From Ramazzottius varieornatus (taxonomy: Eukaryota > Animalia > Tardigrada), in assembly GCA_001949185.1 (NCBI GenBank), contig BDGG01000009.1:1043624-1107623 (forward strand): a DNA stretch of 64,000 nucleotides, in the 5' to 3' direction. Of the stretch, positions 1-63,892 are shown in pieces. The notes under the pieces are model-generated. The model was not told where the DNA came from, searched no databases, and was given only the letters and a program-made list of their open reading frames with translations. The translations under genes and the position numbers were made by a program. Within the stretch, counting starts at the first letter, position 1. The number at the start of each line of letters is the position of its first letter.

Positions 1-3000
1 TTCGCGCCCGTCGTTCCTGTACCGTTGACTGTGTTGAGAGTGCGCCGCTGCCCCGTTTGAGCGGCGCACGGTTCGCGTGACATGTTGGCCGTGTGTGCCA
101 CGGGGACAAATGGGCGCCTAAATGAAAGTCATTTCCGGCCGGCACTAGCTGTAATAGCCAGACGTGTCCTCTTTACATACTTTAGTCCCTTTGAATTGGA
201 AATTGTACTATACACGACGACTGTGTAATGAATATAATGAAAATCACATCCTCTCATTTTCTGGTTCAAGCCTCCCGTTTGACTTTGCGCGCGCTGAATA
301 CTCAACTGCGCCACAAGTGAATATGCATTCCTTTCTCTTAATTTTGCCTGCGACTGTTCTTACTGGCTCTTCATTGAATGATGCTTGCCGAACATTAAAA
401 TATGCGTGATGAATACGGCTGACAGTTTAACAGTGTTGATAGCAGGGTATTTCGATGGCGGCTCCTTGCATGTCGTACAAGGAAGTTTATGGCAGCCAAA
501 GGCTTTGGGTAGCCATCGATATTATAAACTGTGTATATTGACGTGGCCAAATTGATCAGTGTTTAGTAAGATGAGGCGGCTTCTTGTGCATCTGGCGATG
601 ACCATCGTCAAGGGATAATCGTTTCATCAGGCTGATCATTGCCAGAGGAAGATATTTCATAATTACACTCAACCGAAAGGCGGCGACTTGTGATCGGGTT
701 TCTCTTTCGCGAAAGCTATCTTGTATCAACTGGTTACAAGAATGCTTTTGATAATTTGCGAGCTAGGTAAATCAGCTCGACCAGATAGCTTTCCCAAGTG
801 GCGCATGTTTACAGTGTTACTGGCTGGAAACGTGCGGTACTTGCGAGAACAATTTTGCGAGTTTGAATTTCGTCCCAAGTGGCGCATTTTACATTGTTAT
901 CGGCTGGAAACGTGCGCCACCTGAAAAAAGGACCTGGTTGCGTCTGTGTAAGTCCCATGTATGGATCGGACGCCGAAATTTCTGCACTCTTTGACGTGTG
1001 TCGGTTGGTCTTGAAAGGAATTCAATCGTTGGTCAATTAAGAAATTTAATAAAACCGCTGGTGGGTATTGATATATCTTTCGAGTCCTCTGCACGATTAA
1101 CGCTTACAATCTTGCTTATTAACGAGATCCAGCTTGCCACGATTGACGAAGCAAGCCGTATCTCATAGCTTTGATGTATGATACTAAATAAATAGTGAAG
1201 TGAATCAAAATGCAGTTGGGTACTGTACTACTTGGTGAACTCACCAGACAAGTCTGTTGCATGCTGATGTTGCTGCAAACACGCCACTTGGTCCTTGTCA
1301 TGTCAAGGTTTCTCGTTGTGCTCATACTGTGAAAAGCTGATATCTGCTGATTCTGAACGCCTAGTTTTTCTTATTAATATGTATTTGCTTACAATCTATA
1401 AGCCAGTTTTTGTTTGCTTTGTGAAAAACCTCCCCGGAAATATTTATAAAATTTGCATTTGACGTAACATCCCTACCTTGGCGATCCTATAAGCACAGCT
1501 GTCTTTCAAACTGCCGAGAAGCCAATTTATTGCAGAAGAAAATCAGATGGGAACCCGAAAAACTCGGCCAAATCGTTTTCCGAAGTGGCGCAGGCTTCTA
1601 GTGAATATTTTCGAGAGCGTGCGCCACTTGGGGAAACAGTCTGGTCGACTTCGTCTGCCGAGCTCCCATGCTATGAGGTTTCCAGAAGTATGCATGTGGA
1701 TACTCGGAACCAAGAAGTCTGGCTTGTGCTAGGCTTCGTTTTCTTTGCTTCACAGTTTTCCATACTTGAAAGAAAACACCGCAAGAATTTGTGATGCAGT
1801 TATGGCCTTTCGTTCTCCAGTCACTCGTTTTGATTGTGAACTTGTGCAGAAGTATCAAATGTCAAAGCACATTCAGCTGGTCATCAGCGATCATTCAGAG
1901 TTATGTGGTAGTTATGCAGTTGTGATATTGACCGGTCAACTGCTTGACTGCGCTGAGCATTTTCCAGTAAGCTGCATAACACTTCTTGGTTCCATTGTAT
2001 GGAAACCTATAATCAACAAATTTCCAGAGGTTTAGCAATTCAGCTCTGATTGAAAGTCATACAGACGATTGAGGCTGGCATTCTCCTCAAGAATGACTTC
2101 TAACAAGTTGTTGTAACGGACTGACTGCTTCGCTCTGACAGAAAGTAGCGCTTTCGTTCTACACAGCATACTCTTTGTACCCGCTGTAAATTTATGAAAT
2201 TCCTGTCACCGCCTCCAAATGTCTAGCCGAAGATCCGGTGCGTCGCCCACGTAGACGGAATATCTCATCGGCAATATATCTAAGGTATAAGACCCATACG
2301 AGAGGAAATATTCAAGTGCAAAATCAGTCCTAGACTCGGCGCCGCGGCTCCCTGGCTAACTTTTCCTCTTGATCCAGAAAAATATAAGGACCACGGTCCT
2401 AGCTACCACAGGGAACGAGCTGTAGCTGTCACGTGATCGAACAACACCACACCACAAAAAGGGATACCTTTCATGGCCAACAACATTCTTGCTGATGACG
2501 TCATCCAAAACCGTTCTGTCACGTGATTCGACAGAAAAACGCCTCATACCCAATACGAACATTTCACCGTACAATGACTGTGCTCTGGATTATACCGCAG
2601 TTACCCCAGCTTGCGCAGTGTAAAAAACAATGTTTCGCTCGTCGGGCAAGGAAACGTAGGCATATTATAATGGAATGCAAAAGTCGGCATTAACTTAAGG
2701 CAGAATTCTCAAATTGTGATGTCACCAAATGAATTTATTAAGATCGTCTTCGCAAGTGCCACACACCTTTAGCCAATACGAACGAAAACGTGCGCCACTG
2801 GAGACGACGACCTGGGTGAATGGAATCCCAGCACCAGACCTGAACCGCAGGTTGGACGAAAATATAATTTAATTTCCTGCTCATTAATCGATGTTCTCTT
2901 CGGCAGTGATGTCAAATTTCCGCCACTGTTTGCTGTTGGGATTAAATAGTTTGCAGTCCCACTCCAGCAGGATAATCTTTGATTGCACAGTCCCTGTGTC

Positions 3001-3394
3001 AACAACTTGCCTTTTGTGAATTTGTTTGCCTAGTACGTGTAATTACAAAGCCCACTTAACACTCAACAGATTTCGTACGCCTTGAATGAATATTCTCCCG
3101 ATTTTCACACCTGACTGCAGCCGGTCAAAACGTATCATGTTTCCCACCAGGAAGTACTGCCAATGGAGAGAACCTTCTCACTCGGGCCAAATTCGGCTCA
3201 CTTCTACGATCGATCGTCTACTTCAGCTTGCAGCTTTCTGACACGTTTACTTCAAGACCAGCATCACAAGAGCACGAATTGGTAGGGTGAAACTTTGGCC
3301 ACGAGATGAAATCAGCATGTTAAAAAAAACAAAAGCGTGGAGATGGATCTAACTGAACTGTGGATAGGGATATGCTGAATTTCTCGTGAGGGTC

Positions 3395-3466
3395 GGGGCA
3401 ATAGTCTAGGGGTATGATATCCGCTTAGGGTGCGGGTGGTCCCGGGTTCAATTCCCGGTTGCCCCC
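3395..3466 (+). tRNA. tRNA-Pro (AGG)
   Basis: Full cloverleaf: acceptor GGGGCAA/TTGCCCC, D arm GTCTAGGGGTATGAT, anticodon arm TCCGC-TTAGGGT-GCGGG, T arm CCGGG-TTCAATT-CCCGG. A T-run (Pol III terminator) follows immediately. Confidence 0.95.
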
Positions 3467-5500
3467 ATTTTTACATTTTCCGAGACATGATTTTAGTCCC
3501 GGAAGCTGTACACAAGGCCGGAAACGGGGTTCGGAAGGTCCATAGATGTTGCTGGCATTTTTTTAAGTTCACTTCCGAGACTGGAAGTACGCGTAATAGT
3601 TGCATCGTTTCAAGACGCTACAGGCTCGAAATGTTATTGTGGCGCAGTTCGCGCGGCGTTTTTGCATTTTGCACCTAAGCTGTCCTTCATGAACCGGCTT
3701 CACCCACTTCCTTTATGCCGCATTGCACATGCACGCGCTAGAGCCCCAAAAGAAAGAATATGTTCATAACATGAGCGTCAAATGGTCCGACGCCTTGCAT
3801 GTGTCTTGCACTCAATTCCGAGTCTTTCAACTGCAGTTTAGACTTCTTGCCTCGTCGTTGCGCTAAGTGATGATATGACAGGTTTCTCAAGACGATCGAT
3901 CACTTCTTATTAACTATTCGAACCCGTATTGCAGCTTGCCCTATTCAAGACTCGTTCTGAAGTGAATTATTAACTGAAACGCAATCTAGCAGCAATAACT
4001 TGCGTGTCATAAACTCGCTAATAACACCGATATTTTTCGGTACACATCATTGCACAGATCTCTGAAGCCGACGCTACCGTTGTATGGAAGCACCAAACAC
4101 AAAGATGCAAAAGGACGATACATTCGAACCCTTTCTTTTCGAAATTTTGTTTCAAAATTTGAAATAGGTTTTTACTTTTCCGTGACCATTCTCTTGAACT
4201 CCAAATGAAACTAAACAGCCATATTTGGATTTAGTCAAACAAACGCGTCAAGATCTTCAGCCTACATGGCGCACTCATGCAGCCAATAATACTGAGGACA
4301 CACGCCACTTGGGAAAGCTAACTCTACAAGCTAGTCTTCAAAATGGCGCAGTTTATCAGTGTCATTGGCTAAGAACGTGCGCCACTTGGACTGAAAGTAT
4401 TGTTGAGTTCGATTGCCAAGATTGTTTTTGCGGGAAATTTGGTTGTCGAGTTGTATGTGGATCGAGGTGCTTTTTTCGAATGATCGCAGCAAGGTATGAT
4501 GTCAATATGAAATTGATAACAAGGTCAGATGGGTGCCAAGGCGTGTGTGTCGACAGCAACAGCTACTTCTGAGGACCGCTCGGTGATGCAACGAGAACGT
4601 TTTAATTGTTTGTTAGGAGTTGTGTCTTGTAAATTATTTGTGACAGCGATGGCCTGCTGTCTTTTTTCGCACTCGACTAGAAGGAGCCACAGCGGGAACC
4701 TGCCGCACGGCCAGCAGGGTACCAGCAGGACGCCGGTGGAGCCAAGCGGTGAAGGATGTACACAAAGACTACCCTGCTGGATGCTTGCAAGCTTAACCTA
4801 TCGTTACAAGGTCCATACCTTCTCCGTAGGATATGCAAGCTCCGTACGGCGCAAGTATGCATCATTTGAAATCCATCATTCTGCAAAATACGCCACTGAC
4901 ACTACCGACTGAAATTCATTTCTTCCTCTGTGTCGAATTTCTCTCCCCTCATCGTTACAAAAATCTTCTCGCTTTGCTCGAGCGAAACTACGAGAACAAT
5001 ATTTCCATGTCGATTTGAGATTTCACTTTATATTCCGAATAGAAAACGCAACTGATCGCCGAATGGCCGCCGTCATAACAGCTGAGGATACCATAAACCA
5101 CAGTATGCGGTATGCTGCATGTATGCTGCCAGTGGCGACACCTGCAGTTGCGGTTGCAGGCTGGGCGTTGCCTGCGTGGGAACCAGCCAGCGCGTCGCTT
5201 AGCGGAAGTCATGCATGCCGGCAGACGATCTTGCCCCTTCTTCTGAATACTGCCTACCATAATCTGTTTCCCCGAGAACTGGTTCATCTTCGTTATTATT
5301 CATTACTGACAAGACTAAAAACTCAACACTTTGCTAAATCTTCGCAGAAGGAATGAAAGAGAGATCAACTTAAGATCGCAGTAATGTCAGAATCGTGGCA
5401 GGAAACTGAATGGCGCGATCTCTGCGTGAGATGGCGTAAGCACAGCAAGTACAAAAGTACATCTTCCATGCCTTTCCCGTTTTTGAAAGGGGAAGAGAAT

Positions 5501-8477
5501 TCACATGCAAATATTATCGGATTCACCGTGATGATCAGTGTGTGATTGGGAAATACTGTATTTACTTTCGCGCTTCCGCCAGTTACACAGCAAGCGTCGG
5601 AATGCTGCTCGATATTCCCGATTGGTCATGCCTGTAAAAGAGGGAAGATGGTTATTACTAGTCGCTACGCGATCCTTGTGTGTACTCTTGGCGGTTACGA
5701 CGACGGAGTCCTTTGTACAATTTCAGTCACCATCTTCAACACCTCCCCAAAAAATTTTCCCTGATTGTCGGCAGTTCCAATATCGCTCTTATTTACATGA
5801 AAAATTAGCATATAGGAACGTCTACGTGACGAAAAAGATCGATGGGGAAACCTTTACCATAAACAAATGGATTTATACAGGAATTGGAATATCCCATCCA
5901 GAGAAAGACTTCCTCGACCACCGGGTGAATCTGTATTGCGTCAAGAGGGTTGACAGTGAAGCAGGTGAAGTAAGGAAGCCAACACGCGGTGAAGGCTCCT
6001 ACGATGATGAAGAGCGTAATGGTCGCTCTGTGCTGACGCAGTATATGCGTGTGACTACGAAAAACAATATGCGGCTTAGTTTTGAACATCACAATAACAA
6101 ACAATTTTGGAAGAACATCGGAAGTTGCCAACCAAACGTACAATGTTGTTTCACCAAGTGGCGCACGCTGTCATCCAACAAAACTGAGAAGGTGTGCCAC
6201 TTGAGAAAACAACCTAACTCGATAAGATTCTTTTTCGAGTTTGCGCATGCTAGCGGTATTGGCTATGATAAGTGTGCGCCACTTGGATAACAATATTGTC
6301 CAGTCAAATTTTCGTGTCAAGGGCGCACGTTTCCATTATGAATGGCTGCAAGCATGCGCCACTCACACTCTTAGTATTCTGCCTGCTATGTGCCCGTCTC
6401 CTACATGCACTACCTGTGAGTTCGATGCCGATGATGATGACCGTCGTCTTTTGGGATACATTCTTTGCTGATGTAAGTTTGTGCGCGAATTTGTTTGACA
6501 TGGCCATAACTGATTGTCAGGATCTTCATGTACATAATGTACAGGACGATCAGAGGGATGTAGAAGGTGCCTATGCCGATGGTGATGCTATAAGGGAGGG
6601 TCTCCACCAGGAAGACACAGTTGTGCGAGGAAGCTTCGTCAACGTTCTGCACGCGTCCGTCTGACGTGTTCCAGCCGGAATAGATGGGCACGAAGGCAAT
6701 CAAGGCCGACAAAATCCATACAGCGGTCAACATTAGAATGGCCGTCCGCTTAGTTATGATTGATCGGTACAGGAGAGGACGAGTGATGGCATAATATCTG
6801 TCAATCGAAACCTGTAAAGAGACAAAAAGATCAAATTAGATTCCAAGAAAACTGTCTCTGTAACCTGTGGATGTGGATTGCGGTGCGGATAAGCGAACGG
6901 GAAACTGTAGGAACCATTCAGAAACCCACAGCCGAACAGAACCTTCGATCATATACATGCGTACATCGAGTCTCAGTTTCAGTGGGGCGTCCGAGTATGC
7001 AGGTTTACCAATGTTTATAAACCTTCGTTTCCTAGTCACTCATTTCCGGTTCGCTTCCAGAAGCATTCGCTTTTGTGAAATTAGAAGAAACTGCTTCGAA
7101 CTACGGAAATTTCAGCGAAAAAATTTCACACTTAAGAGGTTCCGGTTTATCGAAGTCTAGGGCATCGACCGTAATCAGAAAATGTGATTGGGCGATTAAT
7201 CAGTGAGTCGTGTACATTCAAAGGAACCTGCCGGAAGTACACCCAAGACCTGAATACAGAATACAGGAGCAAAATCCAGGTCGGATTTAGCCATCACAGT
7301 CTAAGGAGGAACTGCCAAAGAATATCTTTCGGCTCCCTTAGAGGATCTCCAACAGGGAAGTCCTGTTGATGTTGCTTGTAGCCGGGTTCGCGCTCTCGGT
7401 TTCAGTGTCATTATAAAGGACGGAAGGTGTCTTGTCATGCAAATTAACAACGGACATGAGATCCTGGGAGTCGGCAAAGAGGGTGCGCCACTTGAATGAT
7501 ATTATGATCTCCCAATGGTGTACGCCATCGTCAATTACTCATCCAGAAACCCTCTGGGAGCAATCTAGACAGCAACACCACTTTCACAAGATTGTAAAGT
7601 GGTGGCGGAATGTTTCCCGGATCGTTAGAATTACTCGAGTATACTTACCACGAATAGGTTTAGGATAGATGCAGTCGACAGAAAGACATCCAAGCAAATG
7701 TACAGATTGCAAACGGTACTTCCCAGTATCCAACTGTTGGTCAAGAGCTTGCCGAAGCTGAACGGAAGGACGAAGAGCCCCAAGAGCAAATCACTACAAA
7801 TACAAACAAACAGTATGCGAAAGTCAAGATTTAGAATTCGAATCCATAGTTGGGATGTTGGCAATTAATTCACTCAGATTGTTTTCAAGTGGCGCACGTC
7901 TTCATCGTTATTTGTTGAAGTTGTGCGCCACTTTGGAGAGCTGCTCTTGCCAGGTTTTGTTGACTTCCCAAGTGGCGCATCTTCATGTTGTTACAGCCCG
8001 TATCGATAAGAGAGTGCGCCACTTGGAAAGCAATCTAGTCGAGTTTGATGGCTTTCCCAAGTAGCGCATATTTGCGTTCTTATTTGGTGCGAGAGTACGC
8101 CACTTAGGAAAACGGTGTGAATGAAATCATTTGCCGACATCACCAGTCGAGTTTTGTCTGGAAGGAAGAAAAAACGTGGAATACCTGACAGCCAAGGAGG
8201 CGCAAAAGCTATTCGTGATATTCAGCCGTAGCTGTCTACTGTGGATAATGGCCACACAAACTAGCAAATTGCCGGCAATAGTCCCAATCACAATAAAGAA
8301 GGTGGGTATAGCAATGAGGATGGCGTTGAGCGTCGGCGGCGTGGTCCCCAGCTGGGACTCTCCAAAGTTCCCTGCTTTAGTTAGTCCATGGAACTCATGG
8401 GAAGTACAGTTGACCAACGGGAAACAGGACTGTGTAACCTCCATAAGAAACTCGCTGGAACCTTCTCCCATTAGCAT
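5501..8477 (-). CDS. Aminergic class A GPCR, histamine H2-receptor-like (5 exons: 8477-8185, 7793-7649, 6811-6414, 6054-5858, 5631-5501)
   Basis: Spliced product has GNLLV (TM1), LAVSDLLLG (TM2), LDVFLSTASI...SIDRY (TM3 with the amine-binding Asp), HRATITL..CWLPYF (TM6), WMGYSNSCINPFVY (TM7) and a helix-8 REYRAAF. All introns are GT-AG. Confidence 0.88.
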
Positions 8478-10041: not shown

Positions 10042-13000
10042 TCAAACGAAAGCAGATAGCCGAGAACCGGAAGAACTCTCGGTCTCGGTTTGGACGCCAT
10101 AGTCATCGCTAACCGAATCGAACTCACTATTGTCTTCACTGTACACGACCTCATGGTCCACCATACCTTCTTCCATACCTTCTTGGGGCTGAGAAGCCTT
10201 CAGCTCTAACCCATCCATCTTCTCCAGGAGCTTGGCTCGTTGGGCTGCCAGGAGCTCTGTGCGACGCTGGAAGCGCCGTCTGAACTCCTGCATCATACTG
10301 GCAGCGTACAAAGTACCCACTGTAATATCTTTGGCTAAAAAAGAACAGATTTTTGCTGCTATTATGAATGTATTTATGCGTTTGAGAAGATGATAATACC
10401 TCCTACAGCTGGGATGACGAGATTTAGAAACTTGTCGGGAATTCTGCTCCAGAGGCTTTTGACTATTCCTCTCAGCCGTTCATTAGCTCCATTGACTTTC
10501 CCTTCCGTTTGTATGCCTAATGCCGTTCGAACCAAGGCGAAGAGCGTCGCGTTGAAGTGGACGGTCCCGTCAGCGTACAGTGGCATATTCATCGCCAGTA
10601 GCTTCTGCAAAGGATGAGATGAAAAATGAACATAAGAGAGTGTGCCAAAAATATCTTAATCTTTCAAATTTTTAACTTTTTCCGGAAACGTTGTCTTCCG
10701 GGAGACTTTAATCCCAGTCACTCTATCCCATCTTCTGAATTTTCACCAGAAATCTTGCAATTCAACTCAACTGTACAGAACACTTTCGCTTAAATTTGCC
10801 TTTCAAGTTCTATCCTTGACTGACCGGTAGGCCGGCTGGACGAAACTTACAAGGATCGTCGTCTCAAGTGGCGCAAACGTCCCACCAATAACAATCAAAA
10901 CGCGCGTCACCTGAAACTGCGATCTCGTACGTCTTTTTGCCGGTTTTCGCCTCAGTTTTGTTGTCCGTTTAGCTTCTGTGTTTCATTGTATTCAACTCGC
11001 GCATTTCATGTATCGGTTTTCAGACATCAGACTATGTGTCGTACTTTGCGAGCTAGGCGACGTGGGCAGAACTTGCCAATGCCCAGCGGTGGGTTCATCC
11101 TCTTGAGCAGCGAGACGACATCGCCATGTTGTATCCTTCCGCTGGCCTTGGGGTCGTAGTCTGCCCACAGGCGGACGAAGTCGTCCAAGTGTTGTGGCCC
11201 TAGGATGGACCAATCACGGGTCAAGTAGTCAAAGTTGTCCATGATGACGGCCACCAAGACGTTCAGGATCATGAAGGTGCAGACAAAGTGGAAGGAGGTG
11301 AAGTAGATGTAGGTGAAAGCCGACCCGCAGATGGCGCCTGCTGGTTCGCCCGCTTCCTCGTCACAGAAGACGCCGTTGCGGTAAGCGCAAGACAGCATAA
11401 TGTCCTGCCAGGCTTCGCCGGTAGCGCAGCGGAAGAGGAGCATGCAGGCTTGGGGAAAGGTGCGGAAGTTGTTGTTGCGGCAGATAGCGCTGTTGACATT
11501 GTCCAGCGCAATCTTGCCGAATATCTAGGAATGAAAATGAATAACTAATTCAAAATATCGTGCGAAAAGCCGAGTAAGTCCAAAAATGAAAAGTCGAAAC
11601 CAAACGTCTGTTTTAATTGAAGTGGAAGTTCGGCGAGAAAGGCGACAAGATCATTTTCAAAAGTGGGGCACCTTTACGGTGTGATTGGCTGACAGCGTGC
11701 GCCACTTGAGAGAACGAGCTTGTCCTGGTTGGTTAAATTTCCAAGTGGCGCACGTTTCCAGTGACACAGGCTAGAAACATGCGATACGTAAACGACCTTT
11801 CCGAGTTTGTGTGCCCGACTGCCATATGCTTTGTGAATTTTCTTACCTGCATGCCAATGACGGCGTAGATGAAGAAGATGACGCCGATCAGCAGCGCCAC
11901 GTACGGGAGAGCCTTAAGGGAGCGTGCGAAAGTCCACAGTAAGATGCGAGTGTCTTCCCCGCGTCCCAGCAGCTTGCCGAGTCGTAGAGCTCGGAATACT
12001 CGGAAGAAGTTTAAATTGAGGGTAAAGTGATTACTCTGTAACACAATATGATTGCTTTCAACGTTTTGCACAGTATTAGGTAACAGTAGATTGATACTTA
12101 CGGTGGCAAAGGCGCCGTAGAGGATGTCAATCAAACTGCCGACTAGTACGGCAAAGTCGAAAGAGTTCCACGGATCTCGAAAATAAGTCTGCAAGACGAA
12201 ATAATCTGACTGTGTGAGGGTTAGAACAACAGCTGGTAGGAATAAAAACGAAATTTTTTCTTACGCGTATTCCATAGCCCATAAGTTTGACAATGGCTTC
12301 AACACCGAAGAAACCTGTGAAGATCATGTTGAGGTATTCCAGAGCATGGGCAGAGGAGGCTGGCTCCCCGTTGTACTGCAAAAGTTTCACCATACAGACT
12401 TATTCACTCAATTCTCTCTAGCACTAATGATTCACAGATGATCCGAGTTCAGACCAAAGTCGAAACGTAAAAACACAACCTAAACAAACAAATTCGACCA
12501 GATCGTTTTCCCAAGTTGCGCACGCTTTCACTGTATTGACTGTAACGTGCGCAACTTGGGGAGAAACAGTTTTGATTGCTTTGCCAAGTGGCGCACACTG
12601 TCGATGTTCTTGGTTGAAGCAATGCGCCACTCGGGAAAAACGACCTTGCCCAGTTGGTTTGCCGAGCTCCCAACCATCGTACCTTGGAGGCCATTGCCAC
12701 AGTGTTGAGGATGATCAAGCCAAACACACAGTACTCAAACGGTTCCGAGGTGACCAGCCACCATATCTTGTACTGTAGTCTATTGGTGGGAATGTAGCGC
12801 TTGATTGGTCGAGCAAAGAGCGCGAACTCCATACACATTCGCTGAAAGAAGGAAATCCGCTCATTTCATAAGAGTCGAAAAGGGTTGTCAAAGAATAAAG
12901 ATGTACTTGATTGCGGTCTAACTGGCAGTGGGCGAACTCCTGTTCGCCTTCCTGCTGGAAGGTAACGATGATGAAGCCGACGAAGATGTTGAGCATGAAG

Positions 13001-24459: not shown

Positions 24460-25603
24460 GTTCTTGTGAAGTTTAGTCGGCTCTTGCCAAAGTTTTGGTC
24501 CTTTTGACCTGTCACCATCACACTGTGGGTTTTGTCCACTCTGACGGTTGTGCCCATTTGTTGTGTCATCTCCTTTTAGCGTGTTATCGCATCGTATTTT
24601 CCTCGCCAATTGGTTTTCCTTTTTTTGGAGACTTGGGTCATTGCATGGCTGAATGTGGAAAGGCCTCTTTACGGTAGTACCTCGGTTCCTGAATTTTCTT
24701 GATTTCGGTTCGTTATTTCTCTTAACCTCTAACCTTCTCTTACCTCGTTTTGGTAAGGTTCTGTCGGGCCGTTTTATTTTTCTCTGTCATCTTATTACTT
24801 GCAAGTTTTTTCGGTGCGAGACATTCCCTCGGAAATATAAAAAACTAACCATGAAATCCGTCTTTCTGAGTGCCGCAGGCTTCCAGCTTATATAGAAAAG
24901 GTGCGCCACTTCGGCGAACTATTTCGAGGATTTTTTTCACCGAAGTGGCGCGCGTTTACGGTGCTGTTGGCTGGAAGCGTGCGCTACTTGAAAGAACGAC
25001 TTGGTCGAGTTTGTTCAATGAGTTCTCGGTTGAGCATCGAACGGACCTTGGTTAGGTCGCTAGTACATGAAGAACCTCTCATGGACAGCTTGGTCCATCG
25101 GCTCTCATGGCTTGTATGGTATCGGTTATCGAGGATTGCAGATGGACTTTCGCGTCAGCGGATGATCCTTTTGACGTCTTTGTTGAGCGGCAACCGAGCG
25201 CCACACGTAGCGCAAACGCAAGCTTGCAGTGGATCTGGTTACTATTTAGCGGAGCAAGACCTAGTTGGTCCATGATGAAGTGGCGTTTTGGCCGCGCAGG
25301 CAAGATGACGGAGTAGTTATAAAATTTCCTGCTGTTGTAATCAGTCATGAGATGTCTTGTCGCAAATATACACGATCGTATTTCCTACCTGTTGATACTC
25401 TGCAAACACATTTGAGTTCATAGTCGATCGTCATCGAGACAGATAAAAACAGCTTAATTGCCCTGCAGTATCGTTGCAGCACAGCTATAGCTTAAATTGC
25501 TTCTTCGAGAAACGCTGTCGGTAAAAGTTCCCCCGGTTCTGCACGAAGTATGTTTTGAGACAACAGAACATACATCCCTATTCTTATGCGACGAAGTCAG
25601 AGG

Positions 25604-35528: not shown

Positions 35529-39893
<4,365 letters not shown>

Positions 39894-46375: not shown

Positions 46376-46505
46376 ACCTTCAAACCGTTTTCGTTCCCGA
46401 ATTATTGTAGAAAAGATATCTCTCCTTGTTTCGAAACTGAACTCCTCAAAATGTCGATATCAAACTGAAAGCATTTTATACAGCTGGAATTGATTTTCTA
46501 CATTA

Positions 46506-51146: not shown

Positions 51147-54100
51147 TCATCGGCCTTGCTGGGTGATCTTCAAGCCCGAGGTGCTCTTGCCAATCTGTGA
51201 GATTTGGTCAATGTTGCACACTCGACCGGCATACTCTGGGAGGTAGCTAGCTCCACAGTACGCCGACTTGACCTCGGGCTTGCCTCGATAGATGGGAGTG
51301 TATGAGTATGCACAGATAGTAAAAGGGTTATGTTCATCGTAGGCTAAAGGAACAGCGTCAACTGGGTTCTTGTCGGCCACTTGCAAGATCTTCCGCGCTG
51401 TCTGGGCTACTTCCGGCTTCGGACCTAGCTCCAGGAGACGACGCGCTAACGACCCAGCCGTCTTCAGATCGTTCAGCTTGAAGGCCAGGTTCATGGCCGT
51501 TCGTAGTGTCAGAACTTGATGGACCGGCTGAAGGTTACAGTGTGTGAAGTAAACGGCCAACTGAAATGGGAAAAAAGAATGGAACGATGACACGCCCATG
51601 TAATACTTTTCACCCTAAAGTCCTAATATTGCCCCTTGTCTGATCCAATGTATTTTTCCAGCTATTAATCTTCCACAAACGGAAAACGAACGTACAACGT
51701 ATATCTTAAGTGACGCACCCTTCCAGCCAACAACATCGAATACCTGCGCCACTTGGAAGAAAAATCAACTCGACAAGTTCGTTTCTCCCAAGCGACTCAC
51801 GCTTCCAGCTAATAACACTGTAGACATACGCCACTTAGCATAACGATCTTGTACGTCTTCCCATATTTAGGTCAAGATTTTTTATTTGATACTATCAAGT
51901 ATCAAATAATCTTTCTTACTGGTTTTGGTTTATGACAGATTATCTCAATGTAGATTTTTCGGTTTTGTTCGAAAAGTTTTCCTGACATTAGGATACTTTA
52001 CCTCGCAGCTTCTCTTGCGGTCTTCCGGCTTTTCCGACTTGGCCAGCTCCTTCCTGACCAGTTCCATACTGATGCCCAGCACGTACTCCCTGCAAATCTC
52101 CAGTAGCTGCGAGGCTTCCACCTGTTCCTGCTTACTGGGCACCACCAAGAAGGGAATGTTCCACATGATCTGCCTAAGCTTGTCGACGGCTTCCTGGAAC
52201 TTGCCAGCCGTAGTCAGTTGGTAGCAGGACTGTAGCCGCTGTACCAAGTCCGTTAGCTGCAGGACCATCGCGGGTGCGAAGTTCTTAGGCGTACCCTCTT
52301 GCCAGTTGCGCAGAGGGTAGCTCACCATGGACGGACCTAGCGGTTGTGGTTGGAACGAAGTGCGAGACAGACGCATCATCGATAGCATGGTCTCTTTTAA
52401 CGGGTCAAAGGATACTACACCGATCTGGTCGTGCAAGAGACGGCAAGCTGTCTCGAAAGAACCTGCCAGGACGTGGTCGATGGCCAGCTGAGAGTGACTA
52501 GTCCAAGCTTGGGCCATCGAAGTGCCGCGAGGTGGCGGAGCAAAGTAGCCCGATTCTGCCTTGCCTTCTGCCTGTGGAGCGACGTCAACGGGAATGTCCA
52601 GTTCTTCATCCACATCCCAGCCAGCACCTAAAACAATCACATGACTAAGACAACCGGAAATGATGAGCCCAAGTGCCTCGGACAGACTGCTGGCCAAGCC
52701 AGCCAACAATGTGCTACGTCGTCATGCACCTGCACTCTTAATGACGATCGATTAAGTACGGTTCAGCATATGCAGGTACATGAAACCCGTCCTGCTACGT
52801 AACTGTTTACGTGGTTGATACATACAGCCAACTGTATGCAGGTGAATGAAACATCGTTCTGTCACGCACCTGCATACTTAGTCAGCGTGAAATAGATACG
52901 GCTAAGTGTATCTAGGTAAGCGAAACTTTATTTCGACCCTTTAATCTAATGAAAAATTTTAAAATACACAATCGGTATGATTTTCATGCTAGTCTCGAAT
53001 GTATATCTGCGTAGATTACATTACCTTCTTCGCCTTCCTCATTTGTGGCAGCGTCGCCGCTCACATCCACTGCCACGTCGTCATCGTCACCCCAGCCAGC
53101 TTCTTCTCCCATATCGCCCACATCGACTGCAGCCACAAGGTTCTTGGCAGTCTTGCTTGTTGAAGCAGCGCCTTCGAAAAAGGTCTTGGAGATGGCCAAC
53201 AGCGGCCAGTTCTCGTCCAGTTTCTGCAGAGGTGGTGCTGGCTTGAAGAGGACTGCATCTGGACTGGCTTGGGGCACCGCCTCGCCTTCTTGGAAGTTAT
53301 GTGACAGCCGTTCGGCTATCTCCTCAAAACCGTACGTCTGAGCCGCCAAGTACGCCATGCTATACTGGCCACTGTGATCGAGGATCTTGATCTGTTCACC
53401 GACGTCACCGAGGAAAAGCGCGTCACGGAACTGCCCGCTGGTGTCTTTCCTCACTTCGGCAATCTTCATCATCTTGCGCAGCTTCTCCAGGTTGCCGGTT
53501 ATCAGGTACAAGAACGACAATTTGTCAAAGTTCTTCGTACGCTGGTAAGCCATCTCAACCACTTGGTGATTTCCCTGCAAACATAGTTTCGTATTAGAGT
53601 GAAATCTTAGTCTGCACTGGAGTTATCGGCAAATACACTCGACAAGATCGGTCTCTCAAGTGGCGCACGATTGCAGCGAACAATAGCGCAATGTGCGCCA
53701 CTTGATAAAACGATCAAACATCATCACTTGCTGATATCCTTTTCCCAAGCGGCGCACGCTTTCGGTCAACAACAATGAAAACGTGCGCCACTTGGGAATA
53801 CGATCTTGTTGAGTTTGCTTGTCCAGCTCCCGTTTATCTCATAATTTTATGATTCTTTTCGGCTTATTTTGGTTTGTTTGCAAATATATCGTGTTCGTAC
53901 CTGAAGTAGGGCGGCTTCTGCCAAACGTTCCCAGCAGACCTTATCGTCGATGGACCTGGCTGCTTCCAAGGCAATCTCGATGTTGCCACATTCCAGCGCC
54001 AAAGTAAAGCGCGTCTTCTCGTCTTTGACAAAATGCAAGGCAATTTCAGGATAGCCTTTCTGTTGCAGATAAGCGATGATGGATTGGCCAATTAACTTGG

Positions 54101-56893
54101 AATGTTTGACCATGTGCAACACCTACAAAATAAATGACATTCTGTTGCCTAAATACAATGCCAATGTGCGATAAGCGCACTAGTAAATCCGAGTAGGGCT
54201 ACAATACCTCGTCATAGCGGCGCTGTGAGACCGCCAGCTTGAAGCGGTATTCTGTGGGATCGATGGTCAGCACGCGCGGTACGGCTTCCCGATCCAGACA
54301 ATAGACGTTATTGCCCTTGATGCGCGTTATGTAAATGACGAAATCCAACGTGCGGATGATGCCATGATCGCTGAAACCAACAAGACATTTCCACACAAAG
54401 TTCAACATTGTGCCGTGCTGAAACGGAATGAAACCTACCCGTTGGCGATGGCGTATTTGATGTGGTTTCCGGTTGTATAGACGAAGACGTTATTTTCGTC
54501 CCAGGCTCCGCTCTTAACGTTGACCGTTTCTTGAACACTAGTTAGGACTTCCAAGGAGCGTGTGCATAGCGTTACCTCTGCAAAAGACAGAGACGTTACA
54601 ATCATGCATCAAAGTATACAAGCTAGCTTCCATGGTTAGCTTCGACATCTGAACTTACGGCGCTTGCTCATCATCGCCACGAACGTCATATCGTTGGACC
54701 ACACCACGTACTTCACCTTCGGCACGCGTGCTTGGGCCAACGCTCTGCTAGAATAGAACAACTGTGCTACGGGAAATTATCTAACAAACAACACAGGAAC
54801 AGAAAAAACAACAAGCAAAGAGTTGGGAAGTTGGCAAACAGACTCGACACGACTGCCTTTCCAAGTGGCGCACGCGTTCAGGCAGTATTACAGAGCAGGC
54901 GCGCCATATGAAAAAACCATCTTGTCCAGCTTCCACTTACGCTTTTTGTTGAAGATCGTAAAGGATCATCTGTTCGCCGTCGCGGTAGAGAAGAACTCCT
55001 GTTCCAGCGTAGAAGATTTCGTCACAGTTAGACAACTGGATCTTCTTGCCAGCTTCCTCGTTCTTCAGGTTCTTGATCAGAATCTAATAAACGAAAAACG
55101 CTAAACTAAACTGCATTCACACAGGTTTTTCTGGAAGACGTGGAAACTTTACCTGCTTTTGTCGATCTAAGACGGCAAAGCGGTTGCGAGCAACCCACAC
55201 CGCCATCTGCCCCGAGGCTCGCTTGCCATCGGAAATGTCCGCTTCCTTCGAGCCGAAGTTCTTGGGTAGTGTGTACACTTCATAGATGCTATTTTCGCCA
55301 CTGGGGGTCTTCGTAACCAGCAACAGGGCATTCTCTGCCGGGTTGAAGGCGGCCGAGTACTCCGGCGTACGACCGGCATTGCGCAGTTGCAGTACGGGGT
55401 TGTCTTTGTTGGTGGTGAAATCCAGGCAGCGGACGTGGTGGTCCTTCAAGTAGAAGAGGAGGTTCTGGCTGACGGAGAAGGCTGGTCGTTCTCGCTCCAG
55501 CTTGAAGACGATGGAACCGTTGTCGTGTCCAGCAGCATACAAGTTGAGGGTGGGATGGGCAGCCACCACCCAAAAGCGGTCGTGCTCGCGACGGAAGGTG
55601 TACAGGCAGATGCGCTTGTTGACGTCCCAGACGCGAATGCTCTTGTCCTCGGAATCACTGAGAATGATCTCCGAGTAGTTACTGAAGGCCACGCAGGAAA
55701 CGTTGTTGTAATGACCCCGACACGAATCCACTTCCCAGGCTTTCTCCTCTGCAAACGTAAACAGAGTGCCGGTCAACTACAGCGCATTCGTGTAACGGTT
55801 TCATCAGCATGAATACAGACCCAAAGGCACAAATTCAAATGTTAGTGTATGCAAAACCATGAATCGCTTCATGATCCTGCATACATAGAGTTTTCGACCA
55901 TGCAAAATGCAAATATAACAAAGGTCAAGGGTATCCACAACAGGAAAAGTAATGCAGATGATGAATACTTACGGCTGTATCGCCAAATCTTGACTTGACG
56001 ATCATCGGAGCCGGAAACGATCAGCTTCATGGAAGGATGGAAGGTTGCCCAGTTGACTCCACGATCGTGTCCTTCCAGAACAAACTTCACCACCACGTCT
56101 GATTGGCCAAAAAGCTCGGTCTGGCCCGCGGTACGGATGCTGTCGATGGCGCTCGAGCCGGGCGCGACATTCTTCTTTCTCAGACCAGCAATGTCCCAAA
56201 CTCGAATGGTCTGATCGAGAGACGCTGAGATGACCAAGTCTTCTGATGGATGGAACTGTGCGCACATCACATAGTGATTGTGGCCGGTCAGGATGCTGAT
56301 ACAGTTCCGCGACTGCCAGTTCCATATTCGGACAGTCTGATCGTCTGAGCAACTGGAAGAAAAAACCGTCCATCAATGGATATTCAGATAAAAAACCCAA
56401 AATGGGAGCTTGACACGTCTGGTTCCCACAATGGCGCACATTGTCCGTGTATCTATCCGTCAGCATGCGCCACTTCGAAAGAAAATATGTCGAGCTTGTT
56501 TGCCGATCTAATTACTTAACCTAATCGATGTCGAATCGATGATCGTCGAATCGAGGACCTTTACCTGATAATCCAGGGGTATTCATGATGGAAAAAGGTC
56601 GTGCGGATGTAATCCAGATGGCCGAGAAGCGTGAAGATGCACCGATGTAGTTTGTAATTCCATACTTTGATCTTGTAGTCGTCACCACCGGAGACGAATA
56701 GCGGCTGCTGGGAATGGAAGTGAATACCTCGAACGGGACCCTCGTGTTCGTCAAACTTCTCGATCATGGTATTCAGCCTGTAATCCCACAGCTGGATGCT
56801 GCCGGTGTGCAAACTGGAGAGGATCCATGGTCTCTTCGGATGGAAGCAGAGACCCTTCACACGGGCAGATTTGGATTCGAACTTGGTCAGCAT
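51147..56893 (-). CDS. COPA: Coatomer subunit alpha, multi-exon
   Basis: [23 protein letters not shown] start; WD40 repeats; [14 protein letters not shown]; [11 protein letters not shown]; YDEHNPF C-terminus. Confidence 0.97.
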
Positions 56894-59508: not shown

Positions 59509-60979
59509 ATGGCGGAGCTTTTGCTAGATCCGAACATCCGGACATGGATCTTCATTCCTATCGTTATCATCACATTTTTCATTGGGATCCTCCGCCACTA
59601 TGTGTCCATTCTGATGGCTTCACCCAAGCCAGTGCAACTTCAACAAGTCAAAGACACGTAAGTTACGCGCGGTTATATTGATAGTTCTCGTTTTGGAGCG
59701 TGAAGATGCAAACTTTCTTCTAACCGTATATTTGTTTCATGGTCTGCAGGCAAGCTTTACTGCGAAGTAGGATTCTTCGTGAGAATGGAAAGTACCTTCC
59801 TAAGTCATCATTCCTTATGCGAAAGCACTACTTCAACGACGCTACTTCGGGCATACTCAAAATAGGGCAAGATCGTCCAGCTGCTGCAGCAGCTAACCCT
59901 ATGCAAGGTTCGTAAAGTTTGCCTTATATCACCCGAATCGCTGTCTTCTGTGGCGCACGTTGCTATCGTGATTGACTGAGTGCGTGCGCCACTTTGGCGA
60001 ACGAGCTGGGTGAATTTACAGTATTTGCCGACTTCCGGTCTATACACCGCTGCCGTTGAGCCTTGTTCATGCAACGTACAGAGAATTTCTGGCCTGTATG
60101 CAGATATAAGCCGATTGTTGTGACCAGTTTTGTTGTAGATCCAAATATGTTGCAAGACATGCTGAAAGGCAATCTGGTGAATATGCTGCCTATGATGGCA
60201 GTCGGTGGGTGGATCAACTGGATGTTCTCTGGATTTGTCACGAGTAAGGAGAAGCTAAAAACGCAGCTCTCGGCGTTTTACCAATCAGAACTAAGCGTCA
60301 AAAGAAAATTTTCTGTTTCTAGCGAAAGTTCCATTTCCTTTGACCTGGCGTTTCAAGGACATGCTCCAGAGAGGAATCAATTTACCTTCACTCGACCCTT
60401 CGTGGTAAGTTAGCTGTGGAACCCTCTGCTCTTGGATCAACGATCATATCACACGACTGCTGTAAACTTATTATTTCCGTGCGATCGGTTACCAACTTTA
60501 CGTATGTTTTCAGGGTGAGCTCCGCATCGTGGTACTTTCTGAATGTCTTCGGACTCAGACAGATCTACTCGCTTGTTCTGGGCGCTGACAATGGTGAGTG
60601 CCTTCTAACAACTATAGATTCTGAAGCTCCGACTACGTTCGCTTGCCGTCTTCATCATCGAGTTTTTTTTGCAGCTGCGGATCAGACAAAGTTTATGGAG
60701 GACCAGGTCAACGTGTCGGGCGCACCGCCTGATCCTCGTGCTGCGTTTAAGGTACAGTGTACCACCAACTTGCATACGTTTGCAGTACGGCAGTAGTGGT
60801 ATTTCCTGTATGCACTGTCTTGATGGCTTGGTGGTTGGCTGTGCTGATCACGCTTCGTGTATCAATAGGCTGAATGGGAAGCCATGGAGCTGTACGAGCA
60901 CAAGTACGCTTTGAGAGGCATTGAAGAGGAACTGCTGGCACAGTTCCCTGTTTCAAGAAAGCAAAAGAAGTCTCAGTGA
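59509..60979 (+). CDS. EMC3: ER membrane protein complex subunit 3, multi-exon
   Basis: [80 protein letters not shown]. Confidence 0.96.
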
Positions 60980-61190: not shown

Positions 61191-62024
61191 CTATCTTCCA
61201 AGAAAAGTTCCCGAAGGAAGAAGCATGATAATTAGTACAGGAAGAACTGTCTTTGGCTTCGCGTTTTGAGAAGCAGTGTTTTTGTTGCATCCGTCTCCCG
61301 TACAGCAGCTTGAGCAGGTCCACGACGGTTTCGACTGATCGCACTGTTGATGAAATCCCAAAGCCATAGCACTGGGCAGTCCCAACTCGCAAGGTCCTGT
61401 TTCGCATGATTTGGAGATACGATAGCCACGTTCCGCTGAAATTATTCCAATAACGTTAATTTTCGTTTTTCAAAGTTTATTTCTGAGCAATTTAGGTCTG
61501 ATGATTTTTACTTCATGAGGTCCTCGAGACTTACGGGATGATGTGATTTTGGTAGAGCAGACGACATTGGATGCGTGAATAGTAGGGTTACACGTTTTGA
61601 GATTGCTGTCCCTTGAGCAGTTGTCGTTGGAAGACTCGTCGGCACAATAGTAGCATTTCAGGCCGGGGTCGTTGGGTTTCTGCTTACTCCGCATTTGTGT
61701 GGGTGAATAGTCCCCCGTTTCTCCATGAACCATCAATAGGGATGCTAAAGCTACAGCCGAACCTTCAATCAAAACAGTAAATTTTATTGTGCGTGAAACA
61801 CTGCGAAGCTCAGCACATAAAGTCGACGAGATCATTTTCTGCAGTGGCGCACTTGTTCGGTAACATTGGCTAGAAGCCTGCGCCACTTGATAAAGCAATG
61901 TGGTCAACTTCGCTTGCCGAGCTCCCATTGAGTCCATGGTTTCTGGGCATCTGTTCTTACCGTAGAAGATCCAAATATATGATGGCGAACGAGGAAGTTC
62001 CAAATTCACGATGAAGGCTTTCAT
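61191..62024 (-). CDS. Ly6/uPAR three-finger protein, predicted GPI-anchored (3 exons)
   Basis: Signal-like N-terminus, LKCYYC..C..C..C, ISKSC, CSSCCTGDGCN and a hydrophobic C-terminal tail. Confidence 0.82.
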
Positions 62025-63117
62025 TTTATATGGCGGTTTCCCGAATCGTAAAGCAATTACTCTTTGAACCCATAGGCGGGACAACGGTTGCGACTTTAGC
62101 CGGGAGAAAGGATGGCGACTATTCCCAACTTGATCGTAAAGACGCGATGGAAATCAAAAGGCCTTTGCAAGTGTCTAAGGGAGACTTGCGCGTTAACATG
62201 TCTTGTCAAATTACCGGAAGCTGCCTCGCGACATCGATACCCCGCTGACACTCTTAACTTCCCGTCTTTCGAACAATGAAGGACGATTGGAGTGAGGCGG
62301 AGTTGCCCAACCGAGAAAGCGTTCAGGCCGATATCGGACCTAACATCTCTGATACTTGCGGTGCAGTAGGCTTACTGGGAAGCTTGCTGGATGAGCTGGC
62401 ATGAACTACTGCCGTGTGGGTCCTCGCGTACGTTGGCGGTTGTTCGGGAGGCGACAGCTGGGCTAATCAGCTGGAAGTCATGAACGAGATGATTGGGACT
62501 TCGAGGATTTGTTAGACTTGTGGGATGAGCGAGTAAACGTTTTCCTGAATTAGGAAGTCAAAGCTCGTTAAGGAGAGAGTTTTGTTCTTGTAGGTCGTGC
62601 CCTTCTCCTTGCCGAGCGCTCGAGCACGCGGTGGTTCTTTTTATTTGTTCAGTGAATAACGCACACTTGACGCCTTGATTGAAGGCGGATCCGGAAATTG
62701 GATGAATCTGGTGGATGGTATAACATTGCTAAAACTACCATTCTTATCACGCGAGGCTCGTTCGAATACATCATTCAGATCCAAATCAACCTCACTTACC
62801 AATAATACCAGTTGCATCAAAATCCATCCACTTTTTCTGCATCTTGCTGGTGTGAACCTAGGCTCTATCGGCCTTACCCACAGCAAAGGTTATGGGTGGC
62901 TTTTACTGTACTTTGGAAAAGCTTGGCTGCAAGTCGTGAAAATTTATTTGTCACACCAAGGAGGAAACTCGAAGAATTTGATAACTTGATATAGGATTAT
63001 AGGTCCATTTCTCGGCGAACGAGCCCAATTTTAGAAAAATGACTTTATTAGTCATCGGTTCCGCCGGGATGGGTTGACAGGTTGATGAAACACTTTTAGC
63101 TCAAATGTTCAAAGTGA

Positions 63118-63892
63118 TTAATCCAGAACATGCATCCTTGGCAAAAGGAGGAGATATATTGCCTTGAGCACTGTGTAGCTGGAAGTTCGGCTTCCGGCAT
63201 TGTAGTTGCAGAGATCAGTGGAGCAACAATTGGTACACACCCATTCTTCTGGCTCGTTCACGTCGCAGGGAGCGTGCATCTCCAACGCACGCTTTTGTGT
63301 CAGGCAGGAATCTCTCTTGCTGCATCGCTTCGTGATTTGTAACTTCCCCACTTCCGCTAGGAAAAACCCACCGTGCATTCTTTTCGACAAGATTATTCCA
63401 GCAGTCTGTATAACTTACCTGCGTATCTGACCATGGTCAGACATGTATCGTATGTGATAGGACATTGCCGAACGCTTTCCGTTCCGTTGCATTCGCTGTT
63501 GTCGTGGGCGATATCACAGCTGAAACACTCAATGCCAGAGACTGCAAAAACAACCCTTTTCAGGTTCAAAAATATACGAATGAAATATGGGACGTCGGCA
63601 AATGATTTCGGCTAGATCGTTTCCCCAATTGGCCCTCGAACCCGACGAATCGCAATTTAAACACGCGCCATTTGAGAAAACGATCATCTCGAGCTCACTT
63701 TTCAAGTGGCGCACAATGTCAGTGTTATTGACAGATATCACGCGCCCCTTGACAAAGCAACCCCAGTGATTTCATTGCCGACGTCCCGTATTCACCTAGA
63801 TTGCTTGATATATTACCTTCTGGGATTTTCCAAAGTACCATGGTCAGCAGAAGGCAAAAAGGAAGAATTGAGCTATAGAAATGTTGTGGCAT
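63118..63892 (-). CDS. Ly6/uPAR three-finger protein, predicted GPI-anchored (exons 63892-63817, ~63541-63419, ~63356-63118)
   Basis: MPQHFYSSILPFCLLLTMVLW signal; IECFSC..ECN..CP..YDTCLT; ITKRC; CTNCCSTDLCN; hydrophobic tail. Confidence 0.85.

Follow-up and report, generated by a model that had tools for sequence, protein, structure and literature searches.

A palindromic repeat lies largely in short introns across the window

Among exons of predicted ion-channel, MFS and coatomer-alpha genes, the window (the whole 64-kb stretch of tardigrade DNA analysed here) carries many copies of one short palindromic repeat. Its 11-nt core, CAAGTGGCGCA, matched 75 times with at most one mismatch, compared with 1.28 expected matches and a maximum of 4 in shuffled sequences. 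A profile search with nhmmer found 65 hairpin units grouped into 41 loci, of which 19 are single, 20 double and two triple, close to the ~42 loci and more than 60 units of the preliminary description. The loci are listed below by the coordinates of their profile matches, with strand given as '.'; "core pairs" marks those where paired cores were identified in addition to the profile match.

752..947, strand., 2 units (array), cores 795/833 and 876/913
1536..1675, strand., 1 full-length unit, element 1549-1667, cores 1582-1592 and 1620-1630, loop 1593-1619
2711..2820, strand., 1 unit
4222..4433, strand., 2 units
6102..6363, strand., 3 units
7843..8144, strand., 3 units, period ~82 bp, core pairs
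10843..10946, strand., 1 unit
11618..11837, strand., 2 units
12484..12673, strand., 2 units, core pairs
14046..14172, strand., 1 unit
14782..15002, strand., 2 units
15780..15967, strand., 2 units
16778..16918, strand., 1 unit
21135..21272, strand., 1 full-length unit, element 21143-21265, cores 21180-21190 and 21218-21228
21804..21921, strand., 1 unit
22381..22598, strand., 2 units
24001..24139, strand., 1 unit
24893..25036, strand., 1 unit
26128..26321, strand., 2 units
27197..27401, strand., 2 units
28500..28626, strand., 1 unit
30542..30738, strand., 2 units
32089..32241, strand., 2 units, one with a 32-nt spacer, core pairs
32951..33126, strand., 2 units
33598..33807, strand., 2 units
36637..36767, strand., 1 full-length unit (36639-36761)
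38196..38327, strand., 1 unit
38945..39175, strand., 2 units
40520..40648, strand., 1 unit, GACGTC-type outer arms
43294..43527, strand., 2 units, one with a 26-nt spacer, core pairs
43870..44098, strand., 2 units
47686..47898, strand., 2 units, adjoining MFS exon
49032..49164, strand., 1 unit, between MFS exons
50144..50274, strand., 1 unit
51702..51854, strand., 2 units, adjoining coatomer-alpha exon
53616..53839, strand., 2 units, one perfect core pair with 26-nt spacer at 53657-53704
54816..54937, strand., 1 unit
56406..56508, strand., 1 unit
59929..60043, strand., 1 unit
61798..61929, strand., 1 full-length unit, core pairs
63571..63803, strand., 2 units

Copies in the window lie largely in short introns, mostly as one insertion per intron. 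In two predicted minus-strand introns read by eye, the 14782..15002 locus fills most of the intron at ~14759-15025, adjoining an ion-channel exon, and the 15780..15967 locus lies within the intron at ~15747-16024. Candidate GT/AG sites stand 30-50 bp outside the element in both cases, and the two host introns look like pre-existing introns of 60-85 bp. What had been described as a window-wide lattice is explained by short introns that each took up one insertion and are set apart by exons, not by a chromatin grid. Introner elements are MITE-like transposons that create introns, and the repeat resembles them as an abundant short DNA transposon, present once per intron and making up most of its length. 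However, because the splice sites of these two introns lie outside it, the element does not supply them; nor do their boundaries coincide with element plus target-site duplication (TSD), and these two introns do not fit the introner reading. One gene of the window has tardigrade orthologues, and a metagenome scan returned only a chance bacterial match.

The repeat is a Sola1-type MITE by its sequence features

The consensus unit is a 123-bp perfect palindrome, in which a 37-nt arm and the 11-nt core are followed by a 27-nt non-palindromic loop and then by the inverted core and arm. The loop occurs in both orientations, and the element exists in forms of one, two or three modules with a period of 82 bp. 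When plus-then-minus cores in the window were paired (at most two mismatches, spacers of 24-36 nt), the spacer was exactly 27 nt in 33 of 41 pairs, the others measuring 25 (2), 26 (4), 32 (1) and 35 nt (1); the 26-nt cases noted previously at ~877 and 43440 were confirmed, as were most of the 27-nt ones. Genome-wide, we counted 7,237 perfect cores, where the reversed control gave 20; perfect core-N27-core pairs numbered 638. The total is estimated at ~14,700 units in the 55.8-Mb genome, roughly 2.5% of it, and the density in the window is ~3-5 times the genome average.

The consensus has terminal inverted repeats (TIRs), small size and no ORF. No clear TSD had been resolved in the preliminary description, yet a 4-bp duplication at AWWT targets can be made out: it is perfect at the exact element boundary in 9 of 52 copies (for example AAAT at 21139-21142 and 21266-21269, in the 21135..21272 locus). 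The rate is 2.6% when flanks are unrelated, and shifting the boundary leaves a perfect duplication in 0-3 of 52 copies. Other lengths gave 0/52 (k = 3, 5, 6 and 8) or 6/52 (k = 2). Across the same 52 copies, the four flanking positions were A 36, W 40, W 37 and T 28 on the left and A 35, W 38, W 38 and T 37 on the right. An AWWT/AWDT target is a hallmark of Sola1 (PMC3845634, citing Bao et al. 2009), and the Sola superfamily is present in tardigrade transposable-element libraries (PMC11071193). Given the 4-bp duplication at AWWT targets, the repeat is, judged by these features, an ancient MITE of Sola1 type, a DNA transposon of the non-autonomous kind. The earlier view of a MITE-like dispersed palindrome is borne out, and this analysis assigns the family to Sola1.

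A 10-bp box decays three times more slowly than the rest of the element

The cores had been called nearly invariant amid diverged flanks, which could simply reflect an ordinary old MITE under uniform neutral decay whose copies were found through their cores; indeed, both the preliminary description and our own first counts did find copies in this way. We therefore masked both cores during detection. Core identity was still 0.88, compared with 0.67-0.75 elsewhere in the element, while a simulation of uniform decay through the same pipeline gave 0.71-0.72. In copies detected by one half only, the unseen core was 0.85-0.86 identical. The core showed a p-distance of 0.105 [0.094-0.115], where loop and inner arm stood at 0.290 and 0.266, respectively, and the JC ratio of non-core to core, a within-genome comparison with cores masked in detection, was 3.1 [2.8-3.5]. 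These three results led us to reject the artefact, which is now barely credible: divergence is not uniform across the element, and the contrast between cores and flanks persists in copies that were located without using the cores.

The slowly decaying segment is a 10-bp box, AAGTGGCGCA, together with its inverted twin at a gap of N29; box and twin have diverged by ~10% and all other parts by ~28%. Its edges are sharp, with identity passing from 0.70-0.71 to 0.86-0.94 and then to 0.81 and 0.62. The slow decay is seen alike in G/C and A/T columns and alike in the window and in random genome pieces. The element termini are not conserved like the box, and the TSDs, which are host DNA, also decay faster than the core. 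After controls for ascertainment, alignment and subfamilies (core-masked detection, the uniform-decay simulation, and subfamily, Yule and star models), the core decays ~3 times more slowly than arms, loop and TSD.

Spacer indels are not as frequent as those of the flanks: the rate per site is 0.0057-0.0067 in the loop, half that of the arms at 0.013-0.014 (p = 0.006 and 0.03; the estimator was unbiased in simulation), although homopolymer runs are commoner in the arms and could account for part of this difference. We infer from these rates that loop length is mildly constrained.

Non-core divergence arose mostly as private mutations

Slow decay of the box could also have been set at the source. 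Were the box a transposase-binding site conserved only in transposing lineages, whether by copy-of-copy spread or from many masters, every copy would decay neutrally after insertion and the extra non-core divergence would predate it. Source evolution did happen, as the outer arms fall into at least two co-varying subfamilies in which arm complementarity is kept, the subfamily differences being compensatory between the two arms. Moreover, the TIR of an insect Sola1 MITE contains AAGTGGTG, close to the tardigrade box (7/8 identical; PMC3845634). Nearest-neighbour identity in the sample was also slightly above the star null (0.687 versus 0.666), and one copy's best relative was a little closer than in star simulations.

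However, models with 10-300 subfamilies predict nearest-neighbour identities of 0.71-0.84, and a mixture of up to six subfamilies raised non-core identity only to 0.70-0.75. With one query copy, 27-36% of derived states were shared with its best relatives genome-wide, where a star predicts 22-26% and Yule copy-of-copy growth 39-52%; the closest relatives of the three copies tested reached a ceiling of 79-82% identity. This comparison comprises that one query copy and two identity-only repeats, run with a heuristic search tool. Yule and multi-subfamily models thus call for far more sharing and far closer relatives than are seen. Furthermore, all subfamilies share a single loop consensus, but the loops of individual copies decay at the full rate, and the termini, which transposition needs, lack the conservation of the box. 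In nearly every non-core column all three other bases occur, with transitions over-represented, which is the mark of mutations arising repeatedly and independently. Non-core decay is made up of independent, transition-rich private mutations, and we regard a filter at the source as unlikely.

The box is probably constrained as double-stranded DNA

A structural signal had also been proposed. In one such reading, a GC-rich stem beside the loop would be kept for a needed RNA or DNA hairpin, be it to fold insertions away from splicing, to yield small RNAs or to form a cruciform. Copies sit in short introns (read by eye) and are hence transcribed, 80% of the full-length copies retain a fold much more stable than that of shuffled sequences (mean z -4.5), and palindromic boxes give the same RNA stem whichever their orientation. 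Against this, the arms mutate independently: double changes in the core were observed at 0.013 with 0.010 expected, and neither core nor inner arm showed a compensatory excess above independence. Sense-strand core transitions (strand assigned from ORFs, n = 51) were wobble-compatible in 32 cases and incompatible in 30, where a 3:1 expectation gives ~46:16, so that G:U-compatible changes are not favoured. Protection extends to only 10 of the ~48 pairs in the stem, and an Rfam search found no matching family. As the arms change independently with neither compensatory nor wobble bias, the constraint would act on double-stranded DNA sequence rather than on a hairpin, and the structural proposal fails; we consider it quite improbable.

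The preliminary description had further suggested a dimeric DNA-binding protein site. Core damage is binomially distributed across copies (p = 0.13); a copy usually has 2-3 of its 22 positions changed, and how far the left box is damaged shows no correlation with damage in the right one (rho = -0.13, p = 0.15). Perfect pairs number 638 where ~710 are expected under independence, and the probability of a perfect right core at 27 nt given a perfect left one is 638/3623 = 0.18, against ~0.21 unconditionally; there is no excess of intact pairs. Since damage is binomial and the boxes are independent, neither a selected subset of copies nor an obligate dimer site is supported. Indeed, no functional subset is visible in these data, and nothing in them suggests that the two boxes work as one. 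As to the other half of the suggestion, neither uniform divergence nor equal indel rates in spacer and flanks was found, and a sequence-specific DNA-binding site is the best reading. The slow decay of the paired motif, ~3 times slower than the rest, makes it probable that a protein binds this 10-letter inner motif.

A putative binding site proposed to be kept after insertion

Our preferred reading, which we put at roughly even odds (about 0.5), joins a Sola1-type MITE to a 10-bp box that would be a sequence-specific double-stranded-DNA binding site kept after insertion. The box was probably first a subterminal docking site of the Sola1 transposase. Following insertion, it would have been retained in essentially all copies, either by weak, uniform purifying selection or by being protein-bound; as a guess, the binder might be a domesticated transposase or a factor of THAP-like type. 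That weak purifying selection holds the boxes of ~14,700 mostly intronic units on essentially every copy is a tentative proposal. Uniform constraint on so many copies would be unusual for selection, and a non-selective cause would also fit.

Such a cause would be rate heterogeneity, with the box hypomutable or better repaired, intrinsically or through a bound protein, and no host function implied; in one variant, the mutations date from transposition itself, when the box would have been covered by the bound transposase. Uniform binomial damage, independent boxes and unenriched intact pairs are what a rate effect predicts, and the same uniformity is hard to square with selection that acts on a functional subset. 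On the other hand, the protected block has sharp edges, and G/C and A/T positions, a CpG included, are protected equally. Mutation is usually AT-biased, under which GC-rich sequence should decay faster, and we know of no mutational process that gives a sharp-edged, base-independent pattern of protection. Most versions of this account still need a protein at the box, and we judge a non-selective rate effect rather unlikely.

Related systems place the proposed binding site in context. The Sola1_NA elements of Bombyx mori and Rhodnius prolixus likewise have 4-bp AWWT TSDs, TIRs starting with GG and no coding capacity (PMC3845634). Unlike these, the tardigrade 123-bp unit is a single perfect palindrome with 1-3 internal core-loop-core modules, reaches ~14,700 copies in 56 Mb, and has an internal 10-bp box that decays 3 times more slowly than its termini. 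In Caenorhabditis, the m1m2 motif pairs of the CERP2/CELE2 MITEs are bound by the THAP protein HIM-17, and ChIP and cross-species evidence shows that a subset became germline promoters (PMC9757741). There too, the motifs lie within the inverted repeats of an abundant MITE, form thousands of pairs at a preferred spacing and outconserve the adjacent element sequence. In the tardigrade, by contrast, the observed copies lie in introns, a single box and its inverse make up the motif pair, and conservation within the genome is uniform over all copies rather than limited to a subset. In primates, SETMAR is a domesticated transposase that has retained its binding sites in the Hsmar1/MADE1 TIRs. As there, thousands of MITE-borne transposase-binding motifs could form a genome-wide docking network, although the tardigrade case is built on post-insertion conservation of the sites and not on protein biochemistry.

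Transcription-factor sites carried by MITEs are already known; what is unusual here is measurable post-insertion protection of one short box across nearly all of the ~14,700 copies that an old element has left in a compact animal genome of 56 Mb. If weak purifying selection does act on essentially every copy, this would be an undescribed genome-wide protein-DNA system of tardigrades seeded by a Sola1 MITE, for example a domesticated transposase or THAP-like factor marking gene bodies at roughly one site per gene. Under either explanation, the arms, loop and TSD provide a built-in neutral control beside the test sites: if selection keeps the box, tardigrades would harbour a large undescribed DNA-binding network, and if it does not, the family would be a clean natural case of motif-specific mutation or repair bias.

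A dispersed 123-bp palindrome

In the window, the 11-nt core CAAGTGGCGCA occurred 75 times with at most one mismatch (1.28 matches expected), and 33 of the 41 plus-then-minus core pairs enclosed a spacer of exactly 27 nt. The inverted repeat extended beyond the core, and the whole unit was a 123-bp palindrome in which a 37-nt arm (starting GGGAGCTCGGC) and the core lead into a 27-nt loop, followed by the inverted core and the inverted arm. The loop itself is non-palindromic, and both of its orientations occur. Its consensus carries a CCAAT-box-like CAGCCAAT (e.g. window 21191-21217), which decays neutrally (identity 0.69-0.81) and without protection. The folding energy of the consensus was -103 kcal/mol, while real copies had a mean of -45 kcal/mol (z = -4.5). 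A profile built from the copies recovered 65 units at 41 loci, of which 19 hold one unit, 20 hold two and 2 hold three; this agrees with the number of loci and units counted in the preliminary description.

Across the tardigrade genome assembly (55.8 Mb, 200 contigs), in which the window spans C9:1043624-1107623, we counted 638 perfect core-N27-core pairs and 7,237 perfect cores, whereas the reversed control of the core gave 20. Given that 24-26% of the cores in an unbiased sample were perfect, this count corresponds to about 14,700 units, or roughly 2.5% of the genome, and the density in the window is 3-5 times the genome average. Outside the window, we sampled 200 kb of genome sequence plus 30 loci. 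The family is very unevenly spread: random 10-kb genome pieces (L001-L020) held 0 to 13 units each, with four of them empty, and with 10 units per 10 kb the window falls at the high end of this range. A metagenome scan for the exact box pair at N27 yielded a single contig (L051, 196-242); this GC-rich, bacterial-looking sequence lacks the arms and the match was attributed to chance.

Almost half of the units belong to arrays of 2-3 modules with a period of ~82 bp (core, 27, core, 33), for example at 7843-8144 and 6102-6363, wherein the 33-nt linker consists of two joined inner arms and is itself palindromic. Array neighbours had a common loop orientation in 41 of 55 pairs. The identity of units within an array was 0.587, compared to 0.570 for random pairs. 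With neighbours no closer to each other than random copies, the arrays either predate insertion or came with it, and multi-module forms therefore already existed when the family spread. Only two orphan half-elements were found, and the 'one-arm' units turned out to be array members. The outer arms fall into at least two co-varying types, GAGCTC...CTCGAC and GACGTC...TTCACC, whose differences are complementary between the two arms.

Target-site duplications and class assignment

We placed the element termini by profile before scoring target-site duplications (TSDs) in 52 copies. A perfect 4-bp duplication was present exactly at the boundary in 9/52 copies compared to 2.6% of unrelated flank pairs, and in only 0-3/52 copies when the boundaries were shifted. 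The flank composition on both sides was A-W-W-T, as in the following example:

21139-21142 and 21266-21269, AAAT, the two halves of a TSD

A TSD can hence be resolved, even though none had been clear on first reading of the window. The combination of AWWT and a 4-bp TSD has been named the hallmark of Sola1 transposons (PMC3845634), and curated tardigrade transposable element libraries include Sola elements (PMC11071193). By its duplication and target, the family is probably a Sola1-type MITE. Our literature search returned no paper describing the family, its box (the 10-bp slowly decaying part of the core) or the differential decay of this box, and searching for the letters of the box matched primers but no paper mentioning it.

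Slow decay of the core

Since the copies were initially located via the core, we removed this bias in three steps. When detection relied on a profile of one half of the element, the identity of the unseen core was 0.85-0.86, with neighbours on either side at ~0.65. With both cores masked at detection, the core reached 0.88 compared to 0.67-0.75 elsewhere (n = 140). These two results rule out an ascertainment artefact and bear out the initial claim of conserved cores within a strongly diverged remainder. Synthetic copies with a uniform decay of 30%, passed through the identical pipeline, gave only 0.71-0.72 for the core, which rules out an alignment artefact. In the final step, the 2 x 10 box columns had a p-distance of 0.105 [0.094-0.115], the loop one of 0.290 and the inner arm one of 0.266, with a Jukes-Cantor ratio of 3.1 [2.8-3.5]. 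The block is sharply bounded, identity moving from 0.70-0.71 to 0.86-0.94 and then to 0.81 and 0.62. Within the box, protection did not depend on base type, G/C columns having a p-distance of 0.094 and A/T columns of 0.122 (0.31 and 0.26 for non-core columns). The pattern was alike in the window, the random 10-kb pieces and the other loci.

As an outside reference for the decay rate we used the TSDs, which are host DNA outside the palindrome. Their halves matched at 0.49 per position and 17% were perfect, close to the non-core rate and far lower than the ~0.80 per position and 0.41 perfect that decay at the core's rate would give. It is therefore the core that is slow and not the rest that is fast. 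Plain uniform decay of an ordinary MITE is rejected.

Divergence before or after insertion

Had transposing lineages acquired the differences outside the core before insertion, relatives would have them in common. When up to 6 subfamilies were fitted as a mixture, non-core identity rose only to 0.70-0.75, and the mean nearest-neighbour identity in the sample was 0.687, compared to 0.666 +/- 0.002 under a star null and 0.71-0.84 in models with 10-300 subfamilies. For the copy at 1537-1673, the 30 best genome-wide relatives averaged 0.667 non-core identity and had 27% of derived states in common with it (36% for the best one); the predictions were 0.67 and 22-26% for a star, and 0.75 and 39-52% for Yule copy-of-copy descent. 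Two further copies had no relative above 79-81% identity. Together, the mixture, nearest-neighbour and Yule-versus-star analyses disfavour an origin of the non-core divergence in subfamily or master structure. Moreover, in nearly all non-core columns each of the three alternative bases was present, with a bias towards transitions, which points to recurrent private mutation. The terminal-length statistic in FastTree leaned to a star, the internal-branch statistic being without power, and the variance of divergence among copies was near binomial, which under a clock says nothing on topology. A filter acting only at the level of the source is quite unlikely: the element termini, which transposition requires, were without protection, and the loop, whose consensus does not differ between subfamilies, has fully decayed in the copies. 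We concluded that insertion preceded most of the core/non-core difference; sequences were compared genome-wide for one query copy, using a heuristic search.

Nature of the constraint on the box

Double changes in the core had a frequency of 0.013 (0.010 expected under independent arms), those in the inner arm 0.084 (0.077 expected), and compensation was confined to the outer arm, which defines the subfamilies. The double changes gave no signal of gene conversion between the arms or of a maintained hairpin. For 51 copies whose gene strand was inferred from flanking open frames, sense-strand core transitions comprised 32 G:U-compatible and 30 incompatible changes, and this absence of a wobble bias argues against an RNA-level constraint. 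The two boxes were equally conserved in either orientation. Independent arms, the lack of wobble bias and orientation-equal boxes indicate that what is constrained may be recognition of a double-stranded DNA sequence and not an RNA or DNA stem. A hairpin, or a structural signal as one of the options in the preliminary description, is very unlikely given the same counts.

Core damage was binomial (mean 2.9 of 22 positions, variance 3.5 versus 2.5), so the copies do not fall into an intact and a dead class. Damage to the left and right boxes was uncorrelated, and genome-wide the probability of a perfect right core at 27 nt given a perfect left one was 0.18, compared to ~0.21 unconditionally. The damage distribution, left-right independence and perfect-pair frequency therefore lend no support to an obligate dimer, the strict form of the dimeric site suggested earlier, or to a selected subset.

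Conservation of the spacing fared better. With an estimator that was unbiased in simulation, the spacer had 0.0057-0.0067 indels per site and the arms 0.013-0.014 (p = 0.006 and 0.03), and 83% of copies kept the exact 27-nt spacer compared to 66-68% for arm stretches of equal length, although homopolymer runs in the arms may explain part of this difference.

Spacing of loci and residence in introns

Gaps between loci were under-dispersed (minimum 343 bp; CV 0.65 versus 0.98, P about 0.001), with 3 gaps below 500 bp compared to 12.1 expected, and this trend was also seen in other genome pieces. The window contains multi-exon genes for TRAPPC9, an OTU deubiquitinase, an MFS transporter, coatomer alpha and an ion channel, and the MITE loci occupy short gaps between successive same-strand exons. 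The deubiquitinase has OTUD6B orthologues in H. exemplaris (54% identical to the window protein), P. metropolitanus and one closer relative (P0002, from short Logan/ENA contigs; 66% identical). A tRNA-Pro (anticodon AGG) at window 3395-3466 (+) was the sole Rfam/ARAGORN match in the window. Two introns were read by eye:

about 14759-15025, minus strand, intron with candidate splice sites 30-50 bp outside the element
about 15747-16024, minus strand, intron with candidate splice sites 30-50 bp outside the element

The MITE makes up ~70% of both, and the remainder looks like a pre-existing intron of 60-85 bp. In these two introns, the position of the candidate splice sites outside the element speaks against an introner mechanism. 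Together with the loci lying between same-strand exons, it suggests that the lattice would be one insertion per short intron, with the exons as spacers. The window-wide lattice described initially is thus real as under-dispersion, but intron residence explains the spacing and nothing suggests a chromatin grid.

Possible origin and retention of the box

The 36-bp terminal inverted repeat (TIR) of insect Sola1_NA MITEs contains AAGTGGTG (PMC3845634, Table 1). Compared with the tardigrade box AAGTGGCG, 7 of 8 positions are identical (chance probability ~0.02), and both could possibly reflect a common Sola1 transposase-binding motif. The box was probably a transposase docking site originally. It may also resemble NK-2, E2F, NRF1, CTCF or ZNF143 sites, none of which fits all 10 conserved positions.

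Non-selective hypomutability of the box, or a footprint left at the birth of each copy, would fit the uniform damage across copies well, but most versions would still need a bound protein, and we consider this explanation unlikely. At a probability of roughly one half, we favour the reading that the family is a Sola1-type MITE and its internal box a putative protein-binding DNA site that, after insertion, would have been kept by a weak constraint acting uniformly on the copies.
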